Assembly: GCA_907165135.1 (NCBI GenBank)
Contig: OU015569.1
Span: 7,378,001-7,442,000, forward strand
Direction: 5' to 3'
DNA from: Oikopleura dioica
Taxonomy: Eukaryota > Animalia > Chordata
Length of the DNA: 64,000 nt
Every line of letters starts with the position of its first letter. Within the stretch, counting starts at the first letter, position 1. Under the pieces are notes generated by a model. The model saw only the letters and a list, made by a program, of their open reading frames with translations, made no database searches and was not told the DNA's origin. The position numbers and the translations under genes were made by a program. This document shows positions 21,801 to 36,644 of this stretch, in pieces.

Positions 21801-24800
21801 CGCTTGGCTGGGGCATAATATAATTCTCTGTATTTTATTCTTACGTGTTAACTTTAGGTGGCCAAAGGACAAGATCTTGATGCAGCGAGCTGAACAGGTC
21901 TGCTTCTGTATTCTGCAAGGAGAGTGGCCAACACCTAAATTGCTCAACTCGATGATGAATCTGTCAGCTGTCGGGCAACATGGTGCTGGTAGCTCTGGTG
22001 CAATAGACTCACCTCACCGGACCGAATCGCCCGCCAGCGACTATCGCTCCGCCACCAAAAGTGCCAAAATGCGCGGCCGGCCTCAAGCTCGTACTCCCTA
22101 TCAACCCCAAAACAGTACACTCGATGCCATCAATAGCAGCCAACAGGCGAGGGTCCCTACTATCTCAATAGAACATTTTTTGAAAGACACACATAAAAAT
22201 ATTATAAGTCAGAGATTTAATATATTGCCAGAGTGATTAAAGCTGTTTTCGAAGGTTCATCTAGTTGGAGTTTCAGTGAGTAAGTCTGGTTCTTCTGCAG
22301 ATCTACTCAGATTTGAGTTCATTTGAATTCGACTACAGAATTCAAATAAAATCGCTTCTCGTGGCGTGTTATCCTAATTGATTCTACTTCGTGCATATTT
22401 ATCGTGGTTTGGCTCGCTGATAAGTACTTAATGAAAAAGTAACTTGTGACGTTTGTGGTGGTGTATACGTCGAGAAAATATTTTGGCGTTGGTTGGCTTA
22501 ATGCCAGTATGAGTACGGGGTGGTGTAGTGAACCTAAGACCGCTAAGCCGAATGGATAGTCACATGAATGAATCGGGCGACAAGACGAGCATTATTGATT
22601 GCCCCTATCGAATGTGCCCAGTAACAAATCATTTTTAATTCCCGCGAAAGTAGCTCCTCACTCATTATCCAAAATCACAAGAGAAAGTATTTTATTTGTG
22701 CGGATCCGGGCGCCATCACGTTACACTTTAGTAAGTCTATCCAGTTTGATTATTATCAATTAATTATGTGATGAAAATACGCTGCGCAATGATCATTGAT
22801 ACTCCTGATCGGTCATTAAACGAAAGAGAGTAGATAATTTTAAGGAATTATTTACGAAAGCGAAGCGCTCGTAGGAAGGAACTGTGTGGAGAGATATGTT
22901 ATCTATCAAGCCCCCTTTTGGTTCGGTATTAACTCGCTGGCCTGCAAGTGGCCACTTCCGGCTCTGCTGTCCAAACAACATGTCGAGCCGCTTACTTGCG
23001 AGTGTGGCGGGGTGTTCACACGGCTGTGTTCTCAAAAATGTGGCAACATGTGTAGTAAATCAAGAACGATTATTAAATAATTCAAAACTGGGAAGAACAC
23101 CACGGTTCCGCGCTATTTGCGCCGCTTTCGATAAGCTGCCCGCACACTTGAAGCATCAAATACAAACAATGCCGCCTTTGGGCACTAGGCCCGGCTCCAC
23201 TCTTCGGTCACGACCCATCTCTGGGTAACTAACTAACTTTCCAATCCAATCGATCACTTTTCGCCATTTAAAATATTTTCCACTTTTTGTTCGCAACAAG
23301 AGAAACACAAAACACGCGAAAGGAGCCACAGGCGCCGATTCGCGCCCCAACGATCGAGAAATTAAGAGAAAACGAATAATTACCCCTTCTTTTTTAACAG
23401 AAAGGTAATCATCGCAGAAATTATAAATACAGGATTTCCAATGGCTTTAGAAGATAGTTTTACGTGAATTTTTTCGGGAAGTTAGCTTATTACCATGAGA
23501 TTTTTTTCTAAGGGGAGATCTGAGAATCTGAGAGTCCTTAGCCCTCTGGGACTCTCACTTTAGCCGCGCGCGCATAGCGCGGCTAGCCAATCAGAATACC
23601 GTATTTTTCCGCATTGGGCCGCACTCTAGATTCTATATTCTGAAGTGCCCAACAGGAACTCAAGGAATTTTCTAGACTCCCCCGAGAGGGGAACGGGGAA
23701 GCGAAGCCAGGGGCCTTCTCCCTCTCTAAAAAAATCTCATGGTAGTTTATGGAACTGAATATGATATGATCTTGCTAACTGACGCATTATCTGTTCATTC
23801 GCGGTCAAGTCGAGTACACACATTTAGAAACATTTCAATAAATGTAGGCTTAACCAAATCAAAAGAGAAGAAGTAAAATCAATAGCCACTTATCATTGGT
23901 GATTATATACCCCTTGTCTAACAAATGAACAACTCTTCATGCATAAGACATCTCGATATTACTGTTGCACGGGAGTTGTCGAGTACTTACAAGCGCTTAT
24001 GCTCGCCTGTGATGTGGAAAATGTTATATTGTGTATTAGAAGAGTGGTGGGTCGTGTTTCTCCCTGGAAATTTGTATAATTCCGATCGGCCAATGTATTG
24101 TTTCCTTTAGTGTTTATGACTCCACGGGGTGCCACTTGGCTCGATCGTAAATCGCTCATTGTTCCACTTTCGTCCTTCAGAAGAGCTCGAATAAGAAAAA
24201 TTTGCCCAAGTGGACACCCCATTGCCCTCTTATATCGATTTCGAGAATACTAATCTTAAAATCACGATGGCAAAATATTACTAGTCGTTATTTTTTTCTA
24301 AAAGCGCTCAAAAGAGAATTATTCGCGTCAAGAAAAACAAGCGCAACTTTACAGTGGTGACCCTCTATTATAGTTATTGCAGAAATTGACGGAGCTGCAG
24401 CAAATTGGGCAAGTTTCGAAAGAGGAAGCTGAACAACTTCATCATCTTCTCACTCAGTCGATTATGCTCGGGCTACCTGTCGATGCCCTCATGAGCCAAT
24501 TGACACAGCAGCCGCAGATACCGCCGGAAGCAGCAAAAGCGCCCAAGGTCGACAAAAAGCCCAAAATGGAGCAGAACCTGAACGCAGCTGCCGCTGGAGC
24601 CGCTGCAAAGATGACCGCCGAGCAACAGTCGAAGATAATGGCGCTCGAGAAACAACTTCAGGACCCTGCCATTGCGATGTTACTGAGACAAGGAATGATT
24701 GACCCCGCACAACTGGGACTGGATGCTGAAACCGCGAAACTACTCGGTTTGGCCCCTCCATTAACCAATCCTAAAGCAGCTGCTCTTGACGCAAAGACTC

Positions 24801-27800
24801 TCCTCGGTCAAGCAGGTAATTATCGCATTATTCAAGCACCAAAAATTATCAGCAGCGAAACTATCTTCAACGCTTCTAGCGAAGGAATAATTTGAATTCT
24901 TAGAATTTCACAAACTAGTAGATACCGGTTCGAATGCACGCTCGTTAAAACTTTCTTCTATCAAGGGCATGCCCTCTCTGTACCAAATAATAGCCGAATC
25001 GATTATTTGAGATTAATAAAAGTCTGCGCGTTATTTGAAAAGCGGGCGATGACTGTGGTAAGATGATTTTTTGAAAGGCTGTGAAACCAACCATGTAAAT
25101 ATCAAACTGAGCTCGACCAACAATAATCCGTATTCGTTCAGGCATGACGCCGGAAGTATTGCAGCTGATGCAAATGCAAGGTCTACCGATTCCGGGCATG
25201 GCTGGCCTGGGGGTACCAACCCCGAAAAAATCCGCCAAAAAGCGGCCTGCCCCAACCACTGAGCTAGGCTCTGCCAAAGATCCAGATTCACGCCCAGCTT
25301 CAAGAGCATCGATGGCGTCCGGATCACAGAGAGCATCAACACCGAACGCGGAAGGGAAAAAGAGAAAATCTGATGACAAGGTCGATGTCACTACACTCGG
25401 GCCTAACCAGATCATCCCACTCATTATGGGCGGCGTGAAAATGCCAGAAGGAATTCCGAATAAAGATCTTAAAGGACTACTTGACAGCAATCCGTCCATC
25501 AAGGTAATTGCGCAAATAGGATTATCCCGTTCGCGAGAACTTTGAAAAACTAGCCTCTATTACGTTTAATTAGGTTGACTACGAAGCTCTTGATGCCCTT
25601 TTGGAGAAGCAAAAACCAAAGCCCAAAAAACAGGCACCGACGCCTCAGCCAACGGCAACCGTAACACCTGCACATACGGGAGCAGATCTCGCAGAGCTTG
25701 GACTTACACCTGAGGTCATGGCCCAGCTAATGCAACAAGGGGTCGACCCGTCTAAACTCAACCTCGGTGCGCTTGGGAAGAGCATGGCCAAGCCCAAGGC
25801 GAACGATCCCGCGCATCAACGAGTTCAGCTCATTAATTTGTCGACTTATGTCAAGTTGGATCGGAAAAAGTGTCCGGAACTTTACAATCTCGAGAGCTTT
25901 TTGAAAAAGAATCCCGATTACTTTGTTGCCACAGAGTCAAAAGAATTTGTCATCAAGCACCCTAAGTACTTCCCGCGCACCATGTATCAGCGAATTCAGC
26001 CTGAAATCGATCCACTTGCTCATCTTTCCGCTCTACAGGACCCGAAAATGTTGCAAACACTCATGATGCAAGCTCAAATGGATCCTAAAGCGATGGCGGT
26101 GCTACAAGGACTATCTGCGCCGCAAGCAGCCCATGGAATGCATGGAATGGACCAAAAAATGCTTGCTGCCCTAGGGATGGATAAAAATGCTCTCGCCATG
26201 GCACAACTTGGCGGTCTTGATCCGAATATGCTTAAGGCATTAGGATACGGTGGTGGAGGTGCTGCAGCTATGATGGATCCAAAATTCCTGGCATCAATGG
26301 GACTGGACCCCAAAATGCTCGCCTCTCTTACCGACCCAAAACTTCTTCAGCAGCAGCAACAACAACAACAGCAACAACAGCAACTTGCGATGCTCGGTCT
26401 GCAAGGAATGGACGCTAAAACTATGCAAGCACTTATGGGTGGCTTAGATCCGAAACAACTTGGCCTAGCTGGAATGGACCCGGCGACTCTCATGGCACTT
26501 GGCCTCGGTGGTCTTGGAGGAGGTGCTGCTGATCTCGCGAATCTTCAAAAGCAACAGCAAGAACAGCAGCTTAAAGCCATGCAACAGCTTATGGGTGTCG
26601 GAGGATTAGATCAAAAGCAGCTTGCCGCAATGGGGCTTGGCTCACTAACTGGTGCGCCAGCCGTTGCATCTCCCCAAGCACCGAGATCTTCTACCAGTAC
26701 TCCGAAGCCTTCAACTCCGAAACCGGACGAGCGAAGCACACCCAAACCGACAGACACGGCATCGAACGCTGGCGAGTCTGAGAAAGGTGATGCGAAGGCA
26801 CCGCCTTCGAGTACCTCCCCCGTGAACGGAGCCGATGACGATAAAAAGTCAGTGAAATCAGACAAATCGAAATCAGACAAGAAAGAAGACAAAAACGCTT
26901 CCGATGGATCAAAACCATCTAGCCCTAAACCGGAATCTGCAAAATCCGTCACGCCTCGACCCCCTTCGACTCCTAAATCTTCTCAAATGGATAAAGCTAT
27001 GCAAAATACTCTCAAATCATTAGCATCTGTAGATCCTAAAGCGCTTGCAGCAAAAGGAATTGATCCATCTATGCTCAAGCAACTGGGTATTATTGGCGAC
27101 CAGAAGCCTGCAGCCTCGCCGGTCGCATCTACCGCTTCAAAAGTTGCTGGTCTTGAAGGAATGGACATGGAAACGCTGAAAGCAATCGCTGCCGGTGATC
27201 CACAAGCAATGAATCGCTTACTCCAGCAGGGACAACTAGGTGGACTAGGTGCAGCCGGCCTTGGCGGAGCAAACCCATTGGCAGCCCTGGGAGGACTAGA
27301 TCCGCGAATGCTTGGGCTCGATGAACGATCATTGATGGCCCTCTCTGGTGGAGCAGGCACAGCAAACATACTCGGAGGTCTCGATCCAAAACTTGCAGCA
27401 TCAATGGGACTGGATCCGAACTTGATGAAAGCCCTTGGCATGGACGCTAACAGCATGAAAGCTCTCCAGCAGCAAGAGCTGATGAAGCAACAGCAAATGC
27501 AAATGGCTATGCTCGGAATGGGTGCTGGTGCCGGTGGCATGGATCCAAAGGTGCTTCAAATGCTCGGAGGGCTGGATCCAGCTACTGCCCAAGCGCTCAT
27601 GCTTCAACAGCAAATGGGTAAGAAAATATAAATCACATATTTTTTAAGAATATATTATATTATATAATGAGCGCGTAAAAAAGTTCTTCGGAACATTGGG
27701 CTCCCCGAAAATGTTAGTATAACAATTATTTAAGGTGCAGCTGGAGGCATGGAACAAGCGCTTATGCAACAACTCCTCGCAGGTTCTATGGGTCAGGCGA

Positions 27801-28082
27801 AAACAAAATCCTCTACCCCTAAAAAGACTTCCCTTCCGTACTCTCTGCCCAGCTCTCTCCCAACGTCTCTACCAACTTCTGTTCCTTCAAGCATGAGCAT
27901 GGAACTGCTCAAGCAACAGGATCAACAATTAAGAGCACTCGTTAGTGGTCAACTTCAGCCAGATCAGCTCACTCCAGAACTATCTTTATTAGCTGCACAG
28001 GTAAAGCCATTATGATTGCTTACAATGTACAAACATCTTATTTTAGCTTGGACTACAGGTGCCCTCCTCAAAGAGGAATTAA
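15816..28082 (+). CDS. CHD7: Chromodomain-helicase-DNA-binding protein, CHD6-9/kismet subfamily
   Basis: Two chromodomains ([15 protein letters not shown]; [16 protein letters not shown]). SNF2 ATPase ([30 protein letters not shown]) and helicase-C ([21 protein letters not shown]). CHD7-type [34 protein letters not shown] and WPKDKIL motifs. Two BRK-like segments. Last exon stop TAA at 28080-28082. The exact paralog (CHD6/7/8/9) cannot be resolved by eye. Confidence 0.92.
17696..17720. promoter_or_regulatory. TCACG/CGTGA cluster 7 (3 copies in 25 bp) in a CHD intron
   Basis: Pentamer at 17696, 17708, 17716. Confidence 0.4.
23491..23744. mobile_element. TA-flanked MITE (about 250 bp) in the long CHD intron
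   Basis: TACCATGAGATTTTTTT at the left end is an inverted match to AAAAAAATCTCATGGTA at the right end. Confidence 0.75.
26348..26383 (+). repeat. CAG/CAA trinucleotide repeat encoding 12 Gln in the CHD C-terminus
   Basis: [17 protein letters not shown] in ORF 25601-27631. Confidence 0.9.
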
Positions 28083-29484
28083 GGCTTTCTGTATTTTCCT
28101 GTCGTTGCGATAGTTACCTCAGAATTCGATGTACATGTAAAGTACCATTCATACGCGTTCCTTCTTATTGCTGCTAAAAACATGCACCAGCAAAATATCT
28201 TTACTATACAAAACGTAATAATAAAACTGGAACCACACTGCTTCAGAACTTTCGAAAATGAAACTGATTCTTCTTTCGTCTTATTTTTCACCCGCCCGTG
28301 ACGACCCTACTGTTTATCTAGGTTGAAATATTTTATTTTACTGCCACTCTAGCTTCTATTCTCGCTACAGTAACAACACATTTCCGCTTCCGTTCAACCG
28401 TACAGTCAGAAAATTCTATAAAAACTACAACTTTTCCGCTGTAAATAGATAGTAATAATAAATATCATCACACATTGATATGATCATATTTTTATTCTTA
28501 TTTGGGAGACATGGATCGTTTATTCAGCACAATTCAAGCATATCAGCATTCAAATGTCAGGTGCAATAGTCGTTCGGTTAAGTGGAATAAACATGCCTCT
28601 AAAGAAATAGCAGTTCCTTTTGGTCAGGTAATCAACAACGACCAGCAGCTCAAGAAATAATGCCAAGCCTCTCTGATTCTGTCTTTTTGGGAGAGCAATA
28701 GTTGCATCTGAGAATCAAGACTGCAGCTATATCAAACATACGATGCATGAACTGCTTGATAAACTTATAAAATGAATGTAGCTTAAAATCATGAAAGAAC
28801 TTCTGCAATGAAAGTATAACGAGATTGTGAAGTGCGATTAGCTGACCGCAAGGAAATACTATATTTGCTGGAGATGAGAAAAGTGAGGTCTATTTAGCGA
28901 GTTTCCTTATTCTCAAAAGTTTATGGCTATTCTTAATAATTCGTATTCCTAATGTCCACACAGAGGTTATGTGCCTTTGCGACGCTTGCGAATGAGCGAG
29001 TTCGAATGTCGTGTTACTGCAAATAACAATGAACATGAAAACAAGCGACAACATTCACGATGTATCTCGCGATTCCTCGATGATTTGTATTCAATAAATA
29101 TTAACAGCCTTGACTGCGGGAGGGTGTCGTGGAGAAAGAAAAAAAAACTATCCGGGCCATAATACTAGAATAAGGAAAAAGTGCAAGACCAGGATTAACA
29201 GTAACATTAAAACAAATGTTAGGAAGGGTCAAAGCTCAGCTGTTTTCCTGCTGTCTATGATTTCTTCGATGTACAAGGTTAAGGGAAAAGTCTTACTTAA
29301 TAATTAATGCTTAAATATCCGCAAGATAACAATAACATCAGAGATATACTAAGAGATTAAAAATGTTTATGGGAAAGGAGGAGAAGAGAGGAAGAAATTT
29401 TGTACGATCAATGATAAATACGAAGGATTTTACGGTTTCTGTGCGGGTTTTCGATAAAATATTGAATAGCATGGAACGAATTTA

Positions 29485-31503
29485 TTAGGATTCTGCTCGA
29501 ATGACTTCGTTCTTGATGCCAGGATTCATAGGAACAGCAGCCGGGTTACCATTGCCGCCATTGACAGTTTCTGAGTGTTTAGCGCGCATATGAGCGTGGC
29601 CTTCCGCAAGTCGTTGCTCCACCATTCGTTGCTTCTCGACTGCCGCTGCTTGCGAGGCTTGGTTGAAGCTTTGGTTCTTGAACTTTTCAAACGTTTCCTA
29701 GATGAATGTCACCACAGTTAATTATACTATCTGGATTTCATCCGAAGCATATGATCACACTTCCCGATGCGAAATGAATGACTTACATTGTAACTAACAG
29801 TCGGGATTCCTAACCAGACTGCACTTCTTCTCATAATCAAGTCAGAGAGCTTTCTTGCTCGGTGGTAAGACGGCGGTAAAATTTGTATTCCAGAGGATGC
29901 ACCTTCAGGAGCATCGCTGCTGCATCGAAGCACAACTCTTTTTCCATTCCTAGGCGTCCCTCTATGTATGGACCACGGTCCTAAACAAATGAAGAAGCTT
30001 ACGATCGAGCAGAGCATACCTGTAACGGCCGACTCTTCGCAGAGTTCGACAGAGAATGCTCGGAAGTAGCAGCCTGTGCTCACTTGTTGAGCCATCGCGC
30101 TCTTTATCGCATCACCGTACAAATGAATCGGGCAAGTTCTCAGGAATGGTCTCCATGTATGGGGTTGAATTGCACTTCTTCCCCAGCAAACAGCTTCTTC
30201 TTTCTTCTAAAAAATCTCAAGTTGAAACTATGAAAACATAAAAAAGGTTAATCATCGCTTAAATTAACCCGCTTCGTGCCGAATCTTCCCACCCAATATT
30301 GTTTTTATCAATTTGAATGAAGTTAATTAGTTTAAGTGTTGATTGAAGGGGTTTTGTACCATGAAAAAAGAAGTCATATTCACTTTTTCATTCGGTCGTC
30401 GTTCCAGCAAGGCGTTCTCGGAAGATCGTTCAGACCCATCCCAGATATCGATAATCAAGCATGATATGCCATCGGGGTCGCTTAGACTTGTATTCACTTT
30501 CTAGCGTAAGCATTGTCAGAAAGGTAAATGAAGCACACAAACCTGAATCGCTCTCACACGTGTCACCATTCCTTCTAGGTTCACACAAGAGGGTTGGTTT
30601 TTGAGGAATCGCCCAATGTCCTGCGCGTCGCGAGTTGGGAGGACAATCGCTTTCTTTGACTCTGGTATTCCATTACTTCTGATGACTGGTGGCGGGTCTT
30701 CCTTTGCGGCAAATGTGACGAGATTATCTAGAGTTTGAAGCAAAGCGGAAATGTACAGCCGTTGTTCGAATTTGTTGTCCGGAATCCACTAAATTCGACA
30801 TTTGCAATTGAAAATCAAATGTTCATTTACCTTGAGTTCAGGAGCATTTTTTGGTAGTACGGAGCCAGGTGCAGGCCTGGGATCTTTTGCGACCGCACCC
30901 TTGGGGATCACGACTTCGATGGGTTCAACTAGCTTATTCGAGTCACTAATATTTTATGAAATGCTAGCAAAACTGTTCCTAACATGCGTTCGTCCATTTG
31001 ATCTTCTGAGATCATCCCGCTATGGCTTCAAGATGGTTCTTTATCTATTTTTGGGTGTTTGGTGTTACGATAGTTTGATAGAGAATATAGAACCGTGACT
31101 GCCGGTAAGATGGACGGGGTATGCTACAAGTATTTCGCCGGGTTCTGCTCTAGGCAGTCGGTGGATTGAGTCCACTGTTGCCCAGACAGTCAATTCAAAG
31201 CCCCAGCGGGGACAAGCGTCGCCAGCCCGCGCCGAAGAAATGGTGGGATCTTGAATCCACAGCGTCGTGTTCCATTTCCCCTTAATTAACTTTTAGTAGC
31301 GCTTTAACAGGGGTAAGCACCTTTAGCTCGCCCTTGACTGGTCGGGGAGCTTGGATTTTGACGACCATGCCGACAATGGATAGCTCTCTCAAAGTCCCAT
31401 GCATTCCATTGGCGTTCCAGATCTGCGCTGCTTCTGCCAAAGATACTGGCACAGCTCCTGGAGGAGGAACCCGCGATAGAATCGAGTCACAATCGATCAC
31501 CAT
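29485..31503 (-). CDS. POT1: POT1-like telomeric ssDNA-binding protein (OB1+OB2), about 10 exons
   Basis: OB1-like: LSIVGMVVKIQAPRPVKG, TTLWIQDPT, FELTVWATVDSIHRLPRAEPGEILV (human POT1: [50 protein letters not shown]). OB2-like: IIDIWDGS, TCPIHLYGDAIKSAMAQQVSTGCYFRAFSV, GIQILPPSYHRARKLSDL (human: [55 protein letters not shown]). Comparisons are from memory; one exon junction near 30200-30370 is unresolved. Confidence 0.78.
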
Positions 31504-32530: not shown

Positions 32531-35500
32531 CTACTTAGGCGGCTGGCCTCCTTGACTTTGCGTACAGTGCTCCATGTGGACAGGCCAATGACCCTGCTGG
32601 CACGGATAGTCGCAGTAAGCCGTGTTCCAGCAGCAGTAGAATACAGCTTCCTTGCCACACTGAGCGCACCACTGCTTCGATTTCGTAGCCACTAAACAAT
32701 CCCATAATAGTTTCAAAAGCTTGCCAAGAACTTACGAATGGCCTCTTCTTGCTCCTTCCGCAGTTTCGCTTCGAGACGTTCTATCTCAAGGTTCTTCTCA
32801 TTTTCCATACTCTGTCGGATTTCGGCTATAGTGAGTTCATTGTTATGTCTCATATCTGCCAGCTCCATCTCGTGCTGCCATTTCAGGCGGTCAACTTCCA
32901 GCCGAAGTGCTTCCGCTTGCCCCCCGCCTTCTAAACTTGACAGCATTTCACCGTACATTTGTTTGATAATGTGCTCAAAGTGGCCCATTATACGATCTTG
33001 ATATTGACCCATGGAGACATTGGGCGGTAAACCAGATACTGGCAGTGTATTTAACGAAGGGGAGAGGTCGCGAGGAATCGTGCTTGATAGCGCTTTTAGT
33101 CCCTGTATTTCCGATAAAATACTGGCCGAGCCCAAGCGCGAGTTTTCTTTGGCTGCGCCTTTGGACTTTTCCTTTCCGTTTTTAGGGGTATTGTTGGGTG
33201 GCTCAAGCACCTTCGGCTCTGGCGTAGAGCGAGGAGGTGGCCTTTCCCGACCTCGCTTGATGGCTTCTTTACGCTCTTTCTCTTGACGGTGATATGCGTT
33301 TTTACCCTCTGGTGGAGGAGGAGGCGGCGCCGATTTCTCTGATATTGGAGACTCTGTCCGTAGCTTCGACTTTTGCTGCTGCGCCGTCGTCTCGGCTGGG
33401 CTGTCAGAGCGAAGGCGCTTGGGAGCACGGGCCGGCTCACTCTTCGGCTTGCGTTTCTTCACGTCCTCTTTCGACGCCTCGTCAGAGATAATCAACTTAT
33501 TACCATCATCAGAGTCATCATCTGAGGGGAAATCGAAGGCTCCGTTCGCCGAGTCATCTGAGTCAGCTGACTTTTGCTTGTCGGACTGCTAAGGTTTCGC
33601 ATTTACTCACTTAATAAAAAAATAACCAAATTGTTGCTAGAAACGTTCCTTGGGATTGATAATCGTCGAGACACCCTTGATAAGGGTTTTTATCTTATCG
33701 TTAGCTCGTGGTTCTTTCCGCAAGGGAGGTATTTTGGCAAGCACATTTCCCGGCACTGCTTCAAAAAGATTTTTCACATCGAAATGTTTTTCGGGATCGA
33801 AAGGGGTCTTCGGTGGAAATCGTTTTAATTTGCCATATTTTCGCTCAAGGTTTGCAATGTATTGTTTTAGTTCTCTGATGGCTTCTTCGAACTCTTTCTT
33901 TTGTTTGTTTGCCTAACATAAAAGGTAAGATAGGGTCCCCCGTGTGTTGTTAATAGGGACATGGCCTAATGATACAGTACCTTGGGACAACCAGGGCGAG
34001 TGTACGGGTCTTCGGAAGTGTGCATCGTCACGTGCGTCACCGAGAGCCAAGCCTTGTCGTGTTGACCGAAAAAGCGGATGTCCACGTGATGACTAAATGT
34101 TCTTTAAGATTGTGTTTTGGACAGAACATTCAAAAGCGTAATTCACCAAGCAGAGACAGCTTGAACATTCTTGCTGTCTCTTTCTAGCAACCATTTCGAC
34201 AATTAAGCAGATTTCATAAAATGCGAATATAGGCTCGAAGCTAACTCATTTGATTACAAATGTAGATTCGAAAGGAAGTTTTCGCAATGGACATATGTAA
34301 TCAACCAGTCTCCCGTTTTATAGATGCTAAGTTTCAAGTATGCAATCATTTTTCTTGTTTCTGATGATAAAAAGCAGCTGTAACTGTACTAGTCTCGCTA
34401 GCTGATTGAGTTGATTTAATATGCATTTACGAGAAACAAGAAAAACTTGTAAATATGTCCACTGTACTTACCGAGAGGTTTTAGAGTCACCACTCCCTTT
34501 ACTGAAAACGGTGTTAGTCGACGTGAATACAGCAAACTAACCTCTGTGAACCCAACCTTTGGCAGCACATGACCTTCGCCGGCCAAACAGGATAGCCAGA
34601 GAGTTTTCCCCAGACGATCGGGTGAACCTTGTCGCACACTTGCACAAACCAATCCACAGGCTTCGTCAGAGGCCCAAGATAGCATGATGGGCAGTTTTCG
34701 ATTTCCTGAATCAGATTGATAATTCCTATTAAAAACTGGGGAAGAATACTTGGCACTCTGTCTCCGCGATACGAATGATTTTGTTCGCAGTTGTTGAAAA
34801 GTCGTTCTTCGCTCCGTTGAAAATGATGCAATTATGTTTGATCCATTTCAAGTCGGCCAAAAACGCGTCAGTTGATCCGTACTTCTTCTCTTTGATGTTC
34901 GCTTCTATCTGGGACATGTCCATAGGATGGAAAATGTAGTCTAGATAGTTTGGATTCGCCTGCGTGTCAACAGGTTGCATGAAGATCTCGATTCCTAACG
35001 AAAAAGTAACTCAAGAGTCACACTCGAAAGGAAATACCTGGCGGACGAATTTTACTAAGGCAGTTTCGAAGCATTATGCTTAAATTATGAAGCGAGACAT
35101 TCTTCATGCTCTCGACCCTAGTTTCAAGATTTTCAGCTTCTTCTATTCGGGTACATTCGGGGCAGAAAAAACGCTTGAGAAAAAACAATAATAACGCATC
35201 CATGAGCTGATTCAAAATACCTCTGAAGCTTGTATCTTCTTTTGAACTTTCGGAAGGCATTTTTCGTGATATACACGAGGACAAACGTCGCAGCAAACAA
35301 CTTTGCCCTCGAGATGGCAAGACCAGCAGTAAAAATCGTTGCTTCCATCCTAAAATAACATCTTACTTGATTGAAAGTTGAATACGAAGTCATACCGCAC
35401 TTGGATGAAGATCAAGAGCAGTGGCGTTCAGTTCCGTTGGGGAAGGGCTCTCTTTCTTTGTGACCGAGCTCCTCCGTTCCTGCAAAGATGTGACCTTCGT

Positions 35501-36092
35501 GCGAGTCGGACTCATCAAACCTAACCAAACGTTAAGAGTGCTCATTACGGATTAATTATTTGATCACGGCTGAAGCAAGATTGTTTGGGATCTTATCTAC
35601 GAGAGAACAAACGAGGTAAAGTGCGGTACTGAGGGTAATACACATTTGGACGATTGAATTGGAGGAGCGCAATAAAAGGCGATTAAATTCAACAGGGGAA
35701 TTATTTTAATTGTGAAAGTATTTGCAAATGTTTGGAAAAAAGTATGGAGACGTTAAATTACCATCTTGAGAAGGTGAGAGTTCTGTGCGTGACTTCTTCG
35801 CTTCTGGTTGTTTTTCATCGTCCGGTTCCATTGAAGAGCTGGATCGTTTCTGCGGGTCTGGCCGGGAGAACGCCCGCAGCGATTTCTTCTCGCCGAGAGA
35901 CTTCTCAACCTCCCGGTCGAAAATGTCCTCCGATAAAACCTTAATCAAATTGGTTTTACAAAACTGCTGATAAAGGCGAGCAATAGCGGGTGAACGCCAA
36001 TGACTAACAGAGAGCAAATTTATTAGTTCTAACAAAAATACCCCCGGGCAAAATGAGGGGGAACTTTCGGGATTCTTAGACATAGAGATCAT
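32531..36092 (-). CDS. ZMYND8: PHD-bromodomain-PWWP-MYND chromatin reader (ZMYND8/RACK7/PRKCBP1)
   Basis: PHD ([28 protein letters not shown]...FFCPEC), bromodomain ([10 protein letters not shown]...[11 protein letters not shown]), PWWP ([16 protein letters not shown]), coiled coil, MYND ([38 protein letters not shown]). The start codon is uncertain (36092 or 36083). Confidence 0.9.
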
Positions 36093-36644
36093 CTCAAAGG
36101 CGTAGGATGAGAACGAACCAAGATTCGCTTTTATGACTAGACTATTCAATATCGACTTTACATATAATGGAGCTAATTATGGAATGGCACAACAAGCCAA
36201 GTGTGAAAATCGCTACTACTAGTATCATCGGTAATTAGCTCCCGTCAAGTGCCGCTACTGTAGGTCTCTGAAGAAATGTATAATTTTGATGAAAAACAAA
36301 GGCGCGAAAAGTTAGAGAACGTCGTCTTCACTCGAAAAAAAAATATACAATTATTACGAATATAAGCATTGATGTCAATAGATTCACCGTCTCACGCTAA
36401 AATCGGAAAGAACAATATTCTCCCTAAGAGAGAGTAACGCCATCGAAAATTTGCTCTTTCTTGCGCGATTAAGTATTTTTTGCAAAGAAGGCTTACTCTT
36501 TGAATAATCATTTTTTTCATGATATTGATAAAAACTGCTTTTTTTAAATGGTTAGTTAGGTTAGATCGAGTTTCTATGATTTTGCTGAATGATAATCAAG
36601 GGAAGATTGAGTGGCACCGTCTTTCTCATGGGCGAGGGGGAAGT

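Follow-up and report, generated by a model that had tools for sequence, protein, structure and literature searches.

A probable POT1 orthologue of Oikopleura dioica that ends shortly after its second OB-like domain

Introduction

The known systems that compare best with the protein analyzed here are the POT1 subunits of metazoan shelterin and the POT proteins of nematodes. Mammalian POT1 is functional only when tethered via TPP1, while Caenorhabditis elegans has the small POT1-type proteins POT-1, POT-2, POT-3 and MRT-1, with one OB fold each, and TTAGGC repeats. In a survey of POT1 architectures, OB1 corresponds to pfam02765 and OB2 to pfam16686, OB3 with its Zn-binding cysteines shows good conservation across the metazoan POT1s surveyed (arthropods and nematodes excluded), OB-N is found at the N-terminus of most metazoan POT1s, and HJRL is an insert confined to vertebrates (Myler et al. 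2021, PMC8653790). In the same survey, a TRF orthologue was not found in tunicates and tunicate shelterin was left unresolved (Myler et al. 2021, PMC8653790). The telomere repeat of the tunicate Oikopleura dioica is TTAGGG (PMC8008620), and the species is reported to be without classical non-homologous end joining (PMC12426944, PMC6635534). The gene considered here is located in a 64,000-nucleotide (nt) stretch of O. dioica DNA, below called the window (NCBI GenBank assembly GCA_907165135.1, contig OU015569.1, positions 7,378,001 to 7,442,000 of the forward strand), where its coding sequence runs on the minus strand from 31503 to 29485. A description of this gene was not found in the literature on Oikopleura or tunicate POT1, shelterin or telomerase.

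In this study, we analyzed the structure, transcripts, orthologues and likely ancestry of this gene. It is spliced, expressed, truncated and under purifying selection, and its protein stops shortly after a second OB-like domain, as do the proteins of all 12 orthologue clusters and of two full-length transcript contigs. The domain layout is probably OB1 at about residues 39-200, OB2 at about residues 222-418 and a short tail. We consider it likely that this is the O. dioica POT1 orthologue, reduced to the single-strand DNA-binding module.

Results

Orthologues and missing domains

An exhaustive HMMER search of 1.84 billion representative proteins, for which a 140-residue piece of the OB2 half reading through an in-frame 39-nt intron was used as query, returned seven clusters, all of them orthologues or fragments with at least 62% identity. 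Word-indexed searches with a full orthologue and with a profile yielded 12 orthologue clusters of 395-493 residues, several of which derive from 1.4-2-kb transcript contigs; beyond these 12 clusters, nothing was matched in the word-indexed and profile searches, the profile having been run against a 5.8-billion protein set. The protein is confined to the Oikopleura clade.

All 12 clusters end 23-76 residues past a conserved WLGI motif, the window protein with 76 residues and the other clusters with 23-54. In the family alignment, conservation (majority residue, gaps counted against) is 79-85% in the two OB-like blocks, compared with 38% in the linker and 30%, at half occupancy, in the tail after WLGI. 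The longest orthologues have 16-23 additional residues at the N-terminus, and no family member has space for a third OB fold or an N-terminal OB fold. For a measure of selection, the window was compared with L001, a sister-lineage transcript contig of 2514 nt that was retrieved by scanning metagenome records of the Joint Genome Institute (JGI) with the family alignment. The ratio of non-synonymous to synonymous substitution rates (dN/dS) was 0.026 for the whole coding sequence, 0.017 up to WLGI and 0.096 for the tail, with dS at about 1.1. The gene is thus constrained by purifying selection, tail included, while the tail is short, fast-evolving and poorly conserved relative to the rest of the protein.

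A C-terminal domain corresponding to the split, TPP1-binding OB3 with its Zn-binding cysteines was not found: the 76 residues after WLGI contain no cysteine cluster, the stop is the same in the mRNA contigs and there are no downstream exons. HJRL is absent along with OB3. OB-N is missing as well, with about 38 residues preceding OB1 and in-frame stops located upstream of the ATG both in L001 and in L002, a transcript contig from a more distant species. The upstream stop in L001 indicates that the N-terminus is complete and that there is no OB-N. Because HJRL is vertebrate-specific, its absence in a tunicate is unremarkable, whereas the absence of OB3 is notable because this domain is well conserved in the surveyed metazoan POT1s; the notable losses are OB3 and OB-N, not HJRL. 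The first-pass annotation, which was made from the sequence of the window without database searches, had described the gene as a highly divergent POT1 that seems to be without the OB3/HJRL half. The truncation was borne out by 12 of 12 clusters and by the mRNA contigs, whereas the identity as POT1 is only probable, resting on sub-threshold PF02765 matches and on language-model matches.

Gene structure

The translation of a nine-exon model is identical, letter for letter, to the NCBI protein Oidioi.mRNA.OKI2018_I69.XSR.g15449.t2 of 493 residues (P0011 in our analysis), which is present in the public annotation as an unnamed, uncharacterized entry. The first-pass annotation had located the start (ATG at 31503) and the stop (TAA at 29487-29485) exactly. 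Its "about 10" small exons are nine, and its statement that none of the six-frame open reading frames (ORFs) reveals the gene was overstated, as an ORF of 131 residues at 29727-30122 exemplifies. From 5' to 3', the introns measure 40, 43, 65 (GA-AG), 42, 42, 177, 39 and 89 nt. The features of the gene are as follows, OB1 and OB2 being predicted domains; UTR stands for untranslated region.

Exon 1: 31321..31503, minus strand; ATG, N-terminal 38 residues and start of OB1; match to P0011
Exon 2: 31069..31280, minus strand; core of OB1; exact match to P0011
Exon 3: 30979..31025, minus strand; 47 nt, variable OB1 loop; read joint at 31025, present in mRNA contig L001
Intron 3: 30914..30978, minus strand; 65 nt, non-canonical GA-AG; needed for P0011 and for the join in the L001 mRNA
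Exon 4: 30831..30913, minus strand; end of OB1 including the invariant VIPKGAVAKDPRPAPGSVLP; alignment and match to P0011
Exon 5: 30543..30788, minus strand; linker helix, variable linker and first OB2 strands; alignment and match to P0011
Exon 6: 30384..30500, minus strand; OB2 with WDGS motif; RNA, alignment and match to P0011
Exon 7: 30020..30206, minus strand; OB2; the preceding 177-nt intron has read support
Exon 8: 29787..29980, minus strand; last part of OB2 (HRGTPR ... GIQILPP), then a conserved helix ending in WLGIP
Exon 9: 29485..29697, minus strand; C-terminal tail of 70 residues and TAA at 29487-29485; no OB3
3' UTR: 28500..29484, minus strand; about 1 kb, unspliced, AATAAA starting at 28524; end coordinate approximate

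At the C-terminus, GIQILPP is followed by 29 residues, where about 20 had been noted before, and then by the 70-residue last exon (ETFEKF...RAES-stop), which had been read correctly. In OB1, the last 30 nt of exon 2 encode 10 extra residues in the window lineage (HGSIFSIKLS), which form a loop of the predicted domain, and residues 39-119 of the window protein are the counterpart of the stretch that matches PF02765 in orthologues.

The donor of intron 2 is shifted in the window lineage. At 31099, where other lineages splice, the window reads AG/TC, and the annotated donor is a GT 31 nt downstream; RNA support at this spot comes from other lineages only. The donor at the position used by other lineages is seen as AG/GT in contig L003 (259-400), and in the L001 mRNA and in reads of the RNA-seq data set X10, GGCAG is joined to CCATAGC at intron 2. 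An eight-exon model, in which exon 2 is joined to exon 4 over a 165-nt "intron", was ruled out by reads and orthologues, which place the small exon and the GA-AG intron inside it.

Transcripts and the 3' end

Raw RNA-seq data (X8-X10; oligo-dT, with the species label) originate from a lineage that differs from the window by 5-10%, and their read depth across the gene is thin, at about 1-3. These reads contain the joint 31279/31320 of intron 1 (40 nt), a joint entering the intron 2 acceptor at 31025 and, in four reads, the joint 30206/30384 of the 177-nt intron. Two marine metatranscriptome contigs (X1), with 0-2 mismatches to the window per aligned piece, have the introns at 30542-30501 (42 nt) and 29786-29698 (89 nt) spliced out. 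In total, five introns have RNA support.

The most complete view of the 3' end is given by L001. Downstream of its in-frame stop and ATG, this contig has an ORF of 483 residues, which ends with IRAES-stop at the same position as in the window. The following 3' UTR of about 1 kb contains no ORF longer than 67 residues, is colinear with the window and unspliced from 29697 down to 28518 (BLASTN), and terminates in GCTGAATAAAC, matching the context of the poly(A) signal at 28524 in the window. On the plus strand, a convergent BRK-domain gene is polyadenylated at about 28450-28455, with AATAAA at 28457. About 50 nt separate the 3' end of the POT1-like mRNA from that of the BRK-domain gene, which leaves no room for OB3 exons. 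From the stop to the neighbor's poly(A) site, the minus strand showed no coding potential, and RNA joints leaving the last exon were not seen. Transcripts that skip the stop at 29485 and add OB3 exons, named in the first-pass annotation as a finding that would speak against its reading, were thus not observed, L001 having the same stop and an unspliced UTR.

For a genome this compact, a 3' UTR of 1 kb appears long. The sole patch of it matched by reads of the 5-10% diverged lineage is located at 29229-29275 (about 46 nt), with loose ends on both sides, and may be a conserved UTR element.

In L002, with features at 26-2112, a POT1-like ORF of 411 residues, whose ATG is preceded by an in-frame stop, is followed, 170 nt downstream, by an RNase_T (REXO2-like) ORF. 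The presence of a POT1-like ORF and a REXO2-like exonuclease ORF on one contig is operon-like in appearance. As the neighbor in the window is different and convergent, synteny with L002 is not kept.

Relationship to POT1

When family members were scanned singly, PF02765 (POT1/Telo_bind) matched six of the 12 aligned orthologues and the L002 ORF (E 0.0017-0.046, 14-18.6 bits). The orthologue matches cover profile positions 11-82 of 140 and lie at the stretch expected for OB1, and PF02765 is the only Pfam family that matched several orthologues; RPA, MEIOB or other OB families did not appear even at E<=10.

Feature searches with a protein language model gave a consistent ranking. With the whole protein, clusters carrying POT1 and POT1PC were found with a score of 0.95 and 201/256 shared features, residues 1-200 led to PF02765 clusters (0.95, 192 shared features) and residues 215-425 to PF16686 (POT1PC) clusters (0.93, 183 shared features). 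The ten best family-bearing matches all belonged to one family or clan. According to the calibration, a score of 0.95 is reached once in 100 shuffled proteins, and at least 170 shared features are typical of true members. By eye, and as a lead only, the order of motifs also resembles that of human POT1, namely V-x-G-V-V-K in the first strand, LP...GE-I/L-V, a linker helix, WDG[ST] and H-x-G-T...G-I-x-x-L-P. With the contrary observations below also considered, ancestry from POT1 is highly probable.

Several observations weigh against this assignment. The PF02765 matches of 14-18.6 bits stay below the gathering score of 29, and the orthologues that gave them are not independent, being close kin. 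With the window protein, no Pfam match was obtained at E<=10, nor with stop-free exon pieces (n = 6) or with orthologue P0002, and a match to the PF16686 hidden Markov model was not found in any family member. The Pfam check proposed in the first-pass annotation (POT1, POT1PC) thus gave sub-threshold PF02765 matches in orthologues and neither a match for the window protein nor one to PF16686. Among all PDB sequences, a POT1 chain was not found, either by phmmer with P0002 or with two profiles (A1 and A2). By the tool's own account, the language-model matches are to be treated as leads, and the calibration was made for whole proteins, not for parts. Structure prediction, the other check proposed, did not help: with AlphaFold2, the mean predicted local distance difference test (pLDDT) score was 32.8 for the window protein (12 rows) and 31.4 for a less inserted orthologue (18 rows). 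These models are unusable, and the OB folds are therefore without structural support.

The only matches in the PDB searches were to AMP nucleosidase, lamin B1 and ribosomal protein L28, which were dismissed as due to chance.

Neighboring genes

On the minus strand, a ZMYND8/11-like gene is located at 32531-36149, encoding a bromodomain, a PWWP domain and a MYND finger (Pfam E 2e-17, 7e-5 and 2e-12, respectively). The plus-strand gene at 24377-28455 encodes the BRK domain mentioned above and long runs of G-L/M-D-P-type repeats. Both neighbors are chromatin regulators. Scans of the whole window for tRNAs and Rfam families gave no match.

Discussion

Probable function and its meaning

The protein is probably derived from POT1 and is predicted from its sequence to bind DNA and to act at telomeres. 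In such a role, OB1 and OB2 would bind the TTAGGG 3' overhang and thereby cap the G-strand and keep RPA/ATR signaling off. As OB3 is missing, the canonical OB3-TPP1 contact would not be available to keep the protein at telomeres. The working model that we consider most likely is a free-standing binder of the G-overhang, which would either act alone by its affinity for DNA, in the manner of the C. elegans POT proteins, or be tethered via new surfaces. Candidates for such surfaces are the invariant RSxxWLGI helix after OB2, the FEKF-type motif that comes next in one subclade, and the insertions that are conserved.

A wider reading, which we put forward tentatively and regard as somewhat doubtful, is that the TTAGGG telomeres of Oikopleura and its relatives are capped by a minimal two-OB POT1 unable to contact TPP1 via OB3, in which case a chordate would have lost or replaced the POT1-TPP1-TIN2-TRF bridge. 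Such a loss or replacement would fit the reported absence of TRF in tunicates and the loss of end joining in O. dioica. With the main fusion pathway gone, a tethered shelterin might no longer have been needed, so that a free end-binder of the nematode type remained. If a bare OB1-OB2 protein is indeed the only detectable POT1 of a chordate with ordinary TTAGGG repeats, it would be a natural experiment on what the DNA-binding half does alone and on how end protection is altered in the absence of classical end joining. Because O. dioica is amenable to culture and the protein is small and under constraint, the question can be addressed directly by experiment.

Alternative explanations

Truncation by an annotation or assembly artefact, or a minor isoform whose main counterpart runs on into OB3 exons, is highly improbable and largely refuted already. 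The low read depth of about 1-3 and the divergence of the reads would leave room for it, but independent transcript contigs from several lineages share the position of the stop, the L001 3' UTR is colinear and unspliced up to a conserved poly(A) signal, the convergent neighbor ends about 50 nt beyond with no coding potential between, no RNA joint leads out of the last exon, and the tail is under purifying selection. A paralogue is harder to dismiss, though still unlikely: the gene could be a POT1-derived copy serving some secondary function, or one half of a gene that has been split, while the shelterin role falls to a canonical POT1 or a separate OB3 gene elsewhere in the O. dioica genome. 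POT1 genes are duplicated in nematodes (C. elegans). Duplication of the POT1 gene is also known in rodents (Myler et al. 2021, PMC8653790). On the other side, the HMMER search with the OB2 half among the 1.84 billion representatives returned seven clusters, each of them an orthologue or fragment at 62% identity or more, and the protein and profile searches, over lengths of 271-863 residues, matched only the 12 orthologue clusters; this database evidence against a paralogue is weak, because such searches would miss one that has diverged to the extent of human POT1. Should a canonical POT1 be present elsewhere in the genome, the gene would be an ordinary diverged paralogue.

Slightly less probable still is a descent from something other than POT1, be it another tandem-OB single-strand DNA-binding protein (RPA70/MEIOB-, SHLD2-, BRCA2- or CTC1-like) or a lineage-specific look-alike. 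That no match exceeds any curated threshold, that the PDB gave none and that no usable model was obtained are all compatible with this, and the lower-ranked language-model matches include MEIOB/RPA and BRCA2 OB clusters with scores of 0.88-0.89. However, POT1 families rank at the top in all three language-model searches and in the correct domain order, and the only recurrent Pfam family is PF02765, correctly placed, with other OB families absent at E<=10. We therefore retain a reduced POT1 orthologue as the preferred reading.

Comparison with known telomere-binding proteins

In such a reduced POT1, OB1 (PF02765) and OB2 (PF16686) are probably homologous to their counterparts in the metazoan shelterin subunit, with which they share the order of the domains and the intervening linker helix; the TTAGGG repeat is shared as well. 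It differs from metazoan POT1 by lacking OB3, and with it the Zn-binding cysteines and the TPP1-binding surface, and by lacking OB-N. Compared with human POT1, the Oikopleura protein has extra loops in OB1 and OB2 and a short variable tail in place of about 300 residues, and, in contrast to canonical POT1s, it is too diverged for the curated Pfam thresholds.

With the C. elegans POT proteins, it has in common the absence of a TPP1-binding C-terminal half and a fast-evolving animal genome. In contrast to them, it combines OB1 and OB2 in a single chain and serves TTAGGG repeats, and the two are likened here by description, not by sequence. Direct binding of the overhang as in C. elegans, without the canonical shelterin bridge, is a likely working analogy. 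Judged from motif order and language-model matches, the conserved part appears to end at about the same place, after the post-OB2 helix, as residues 1-299 of human POT1, which were crystallized with telomeric single-stranded DNA, and as the DNA-binding domain of fission-yeast Pot1. Whereas those human and yeast constructs are laboratory fragments of longer proteins, the Oikopleura protein is naturally this short.
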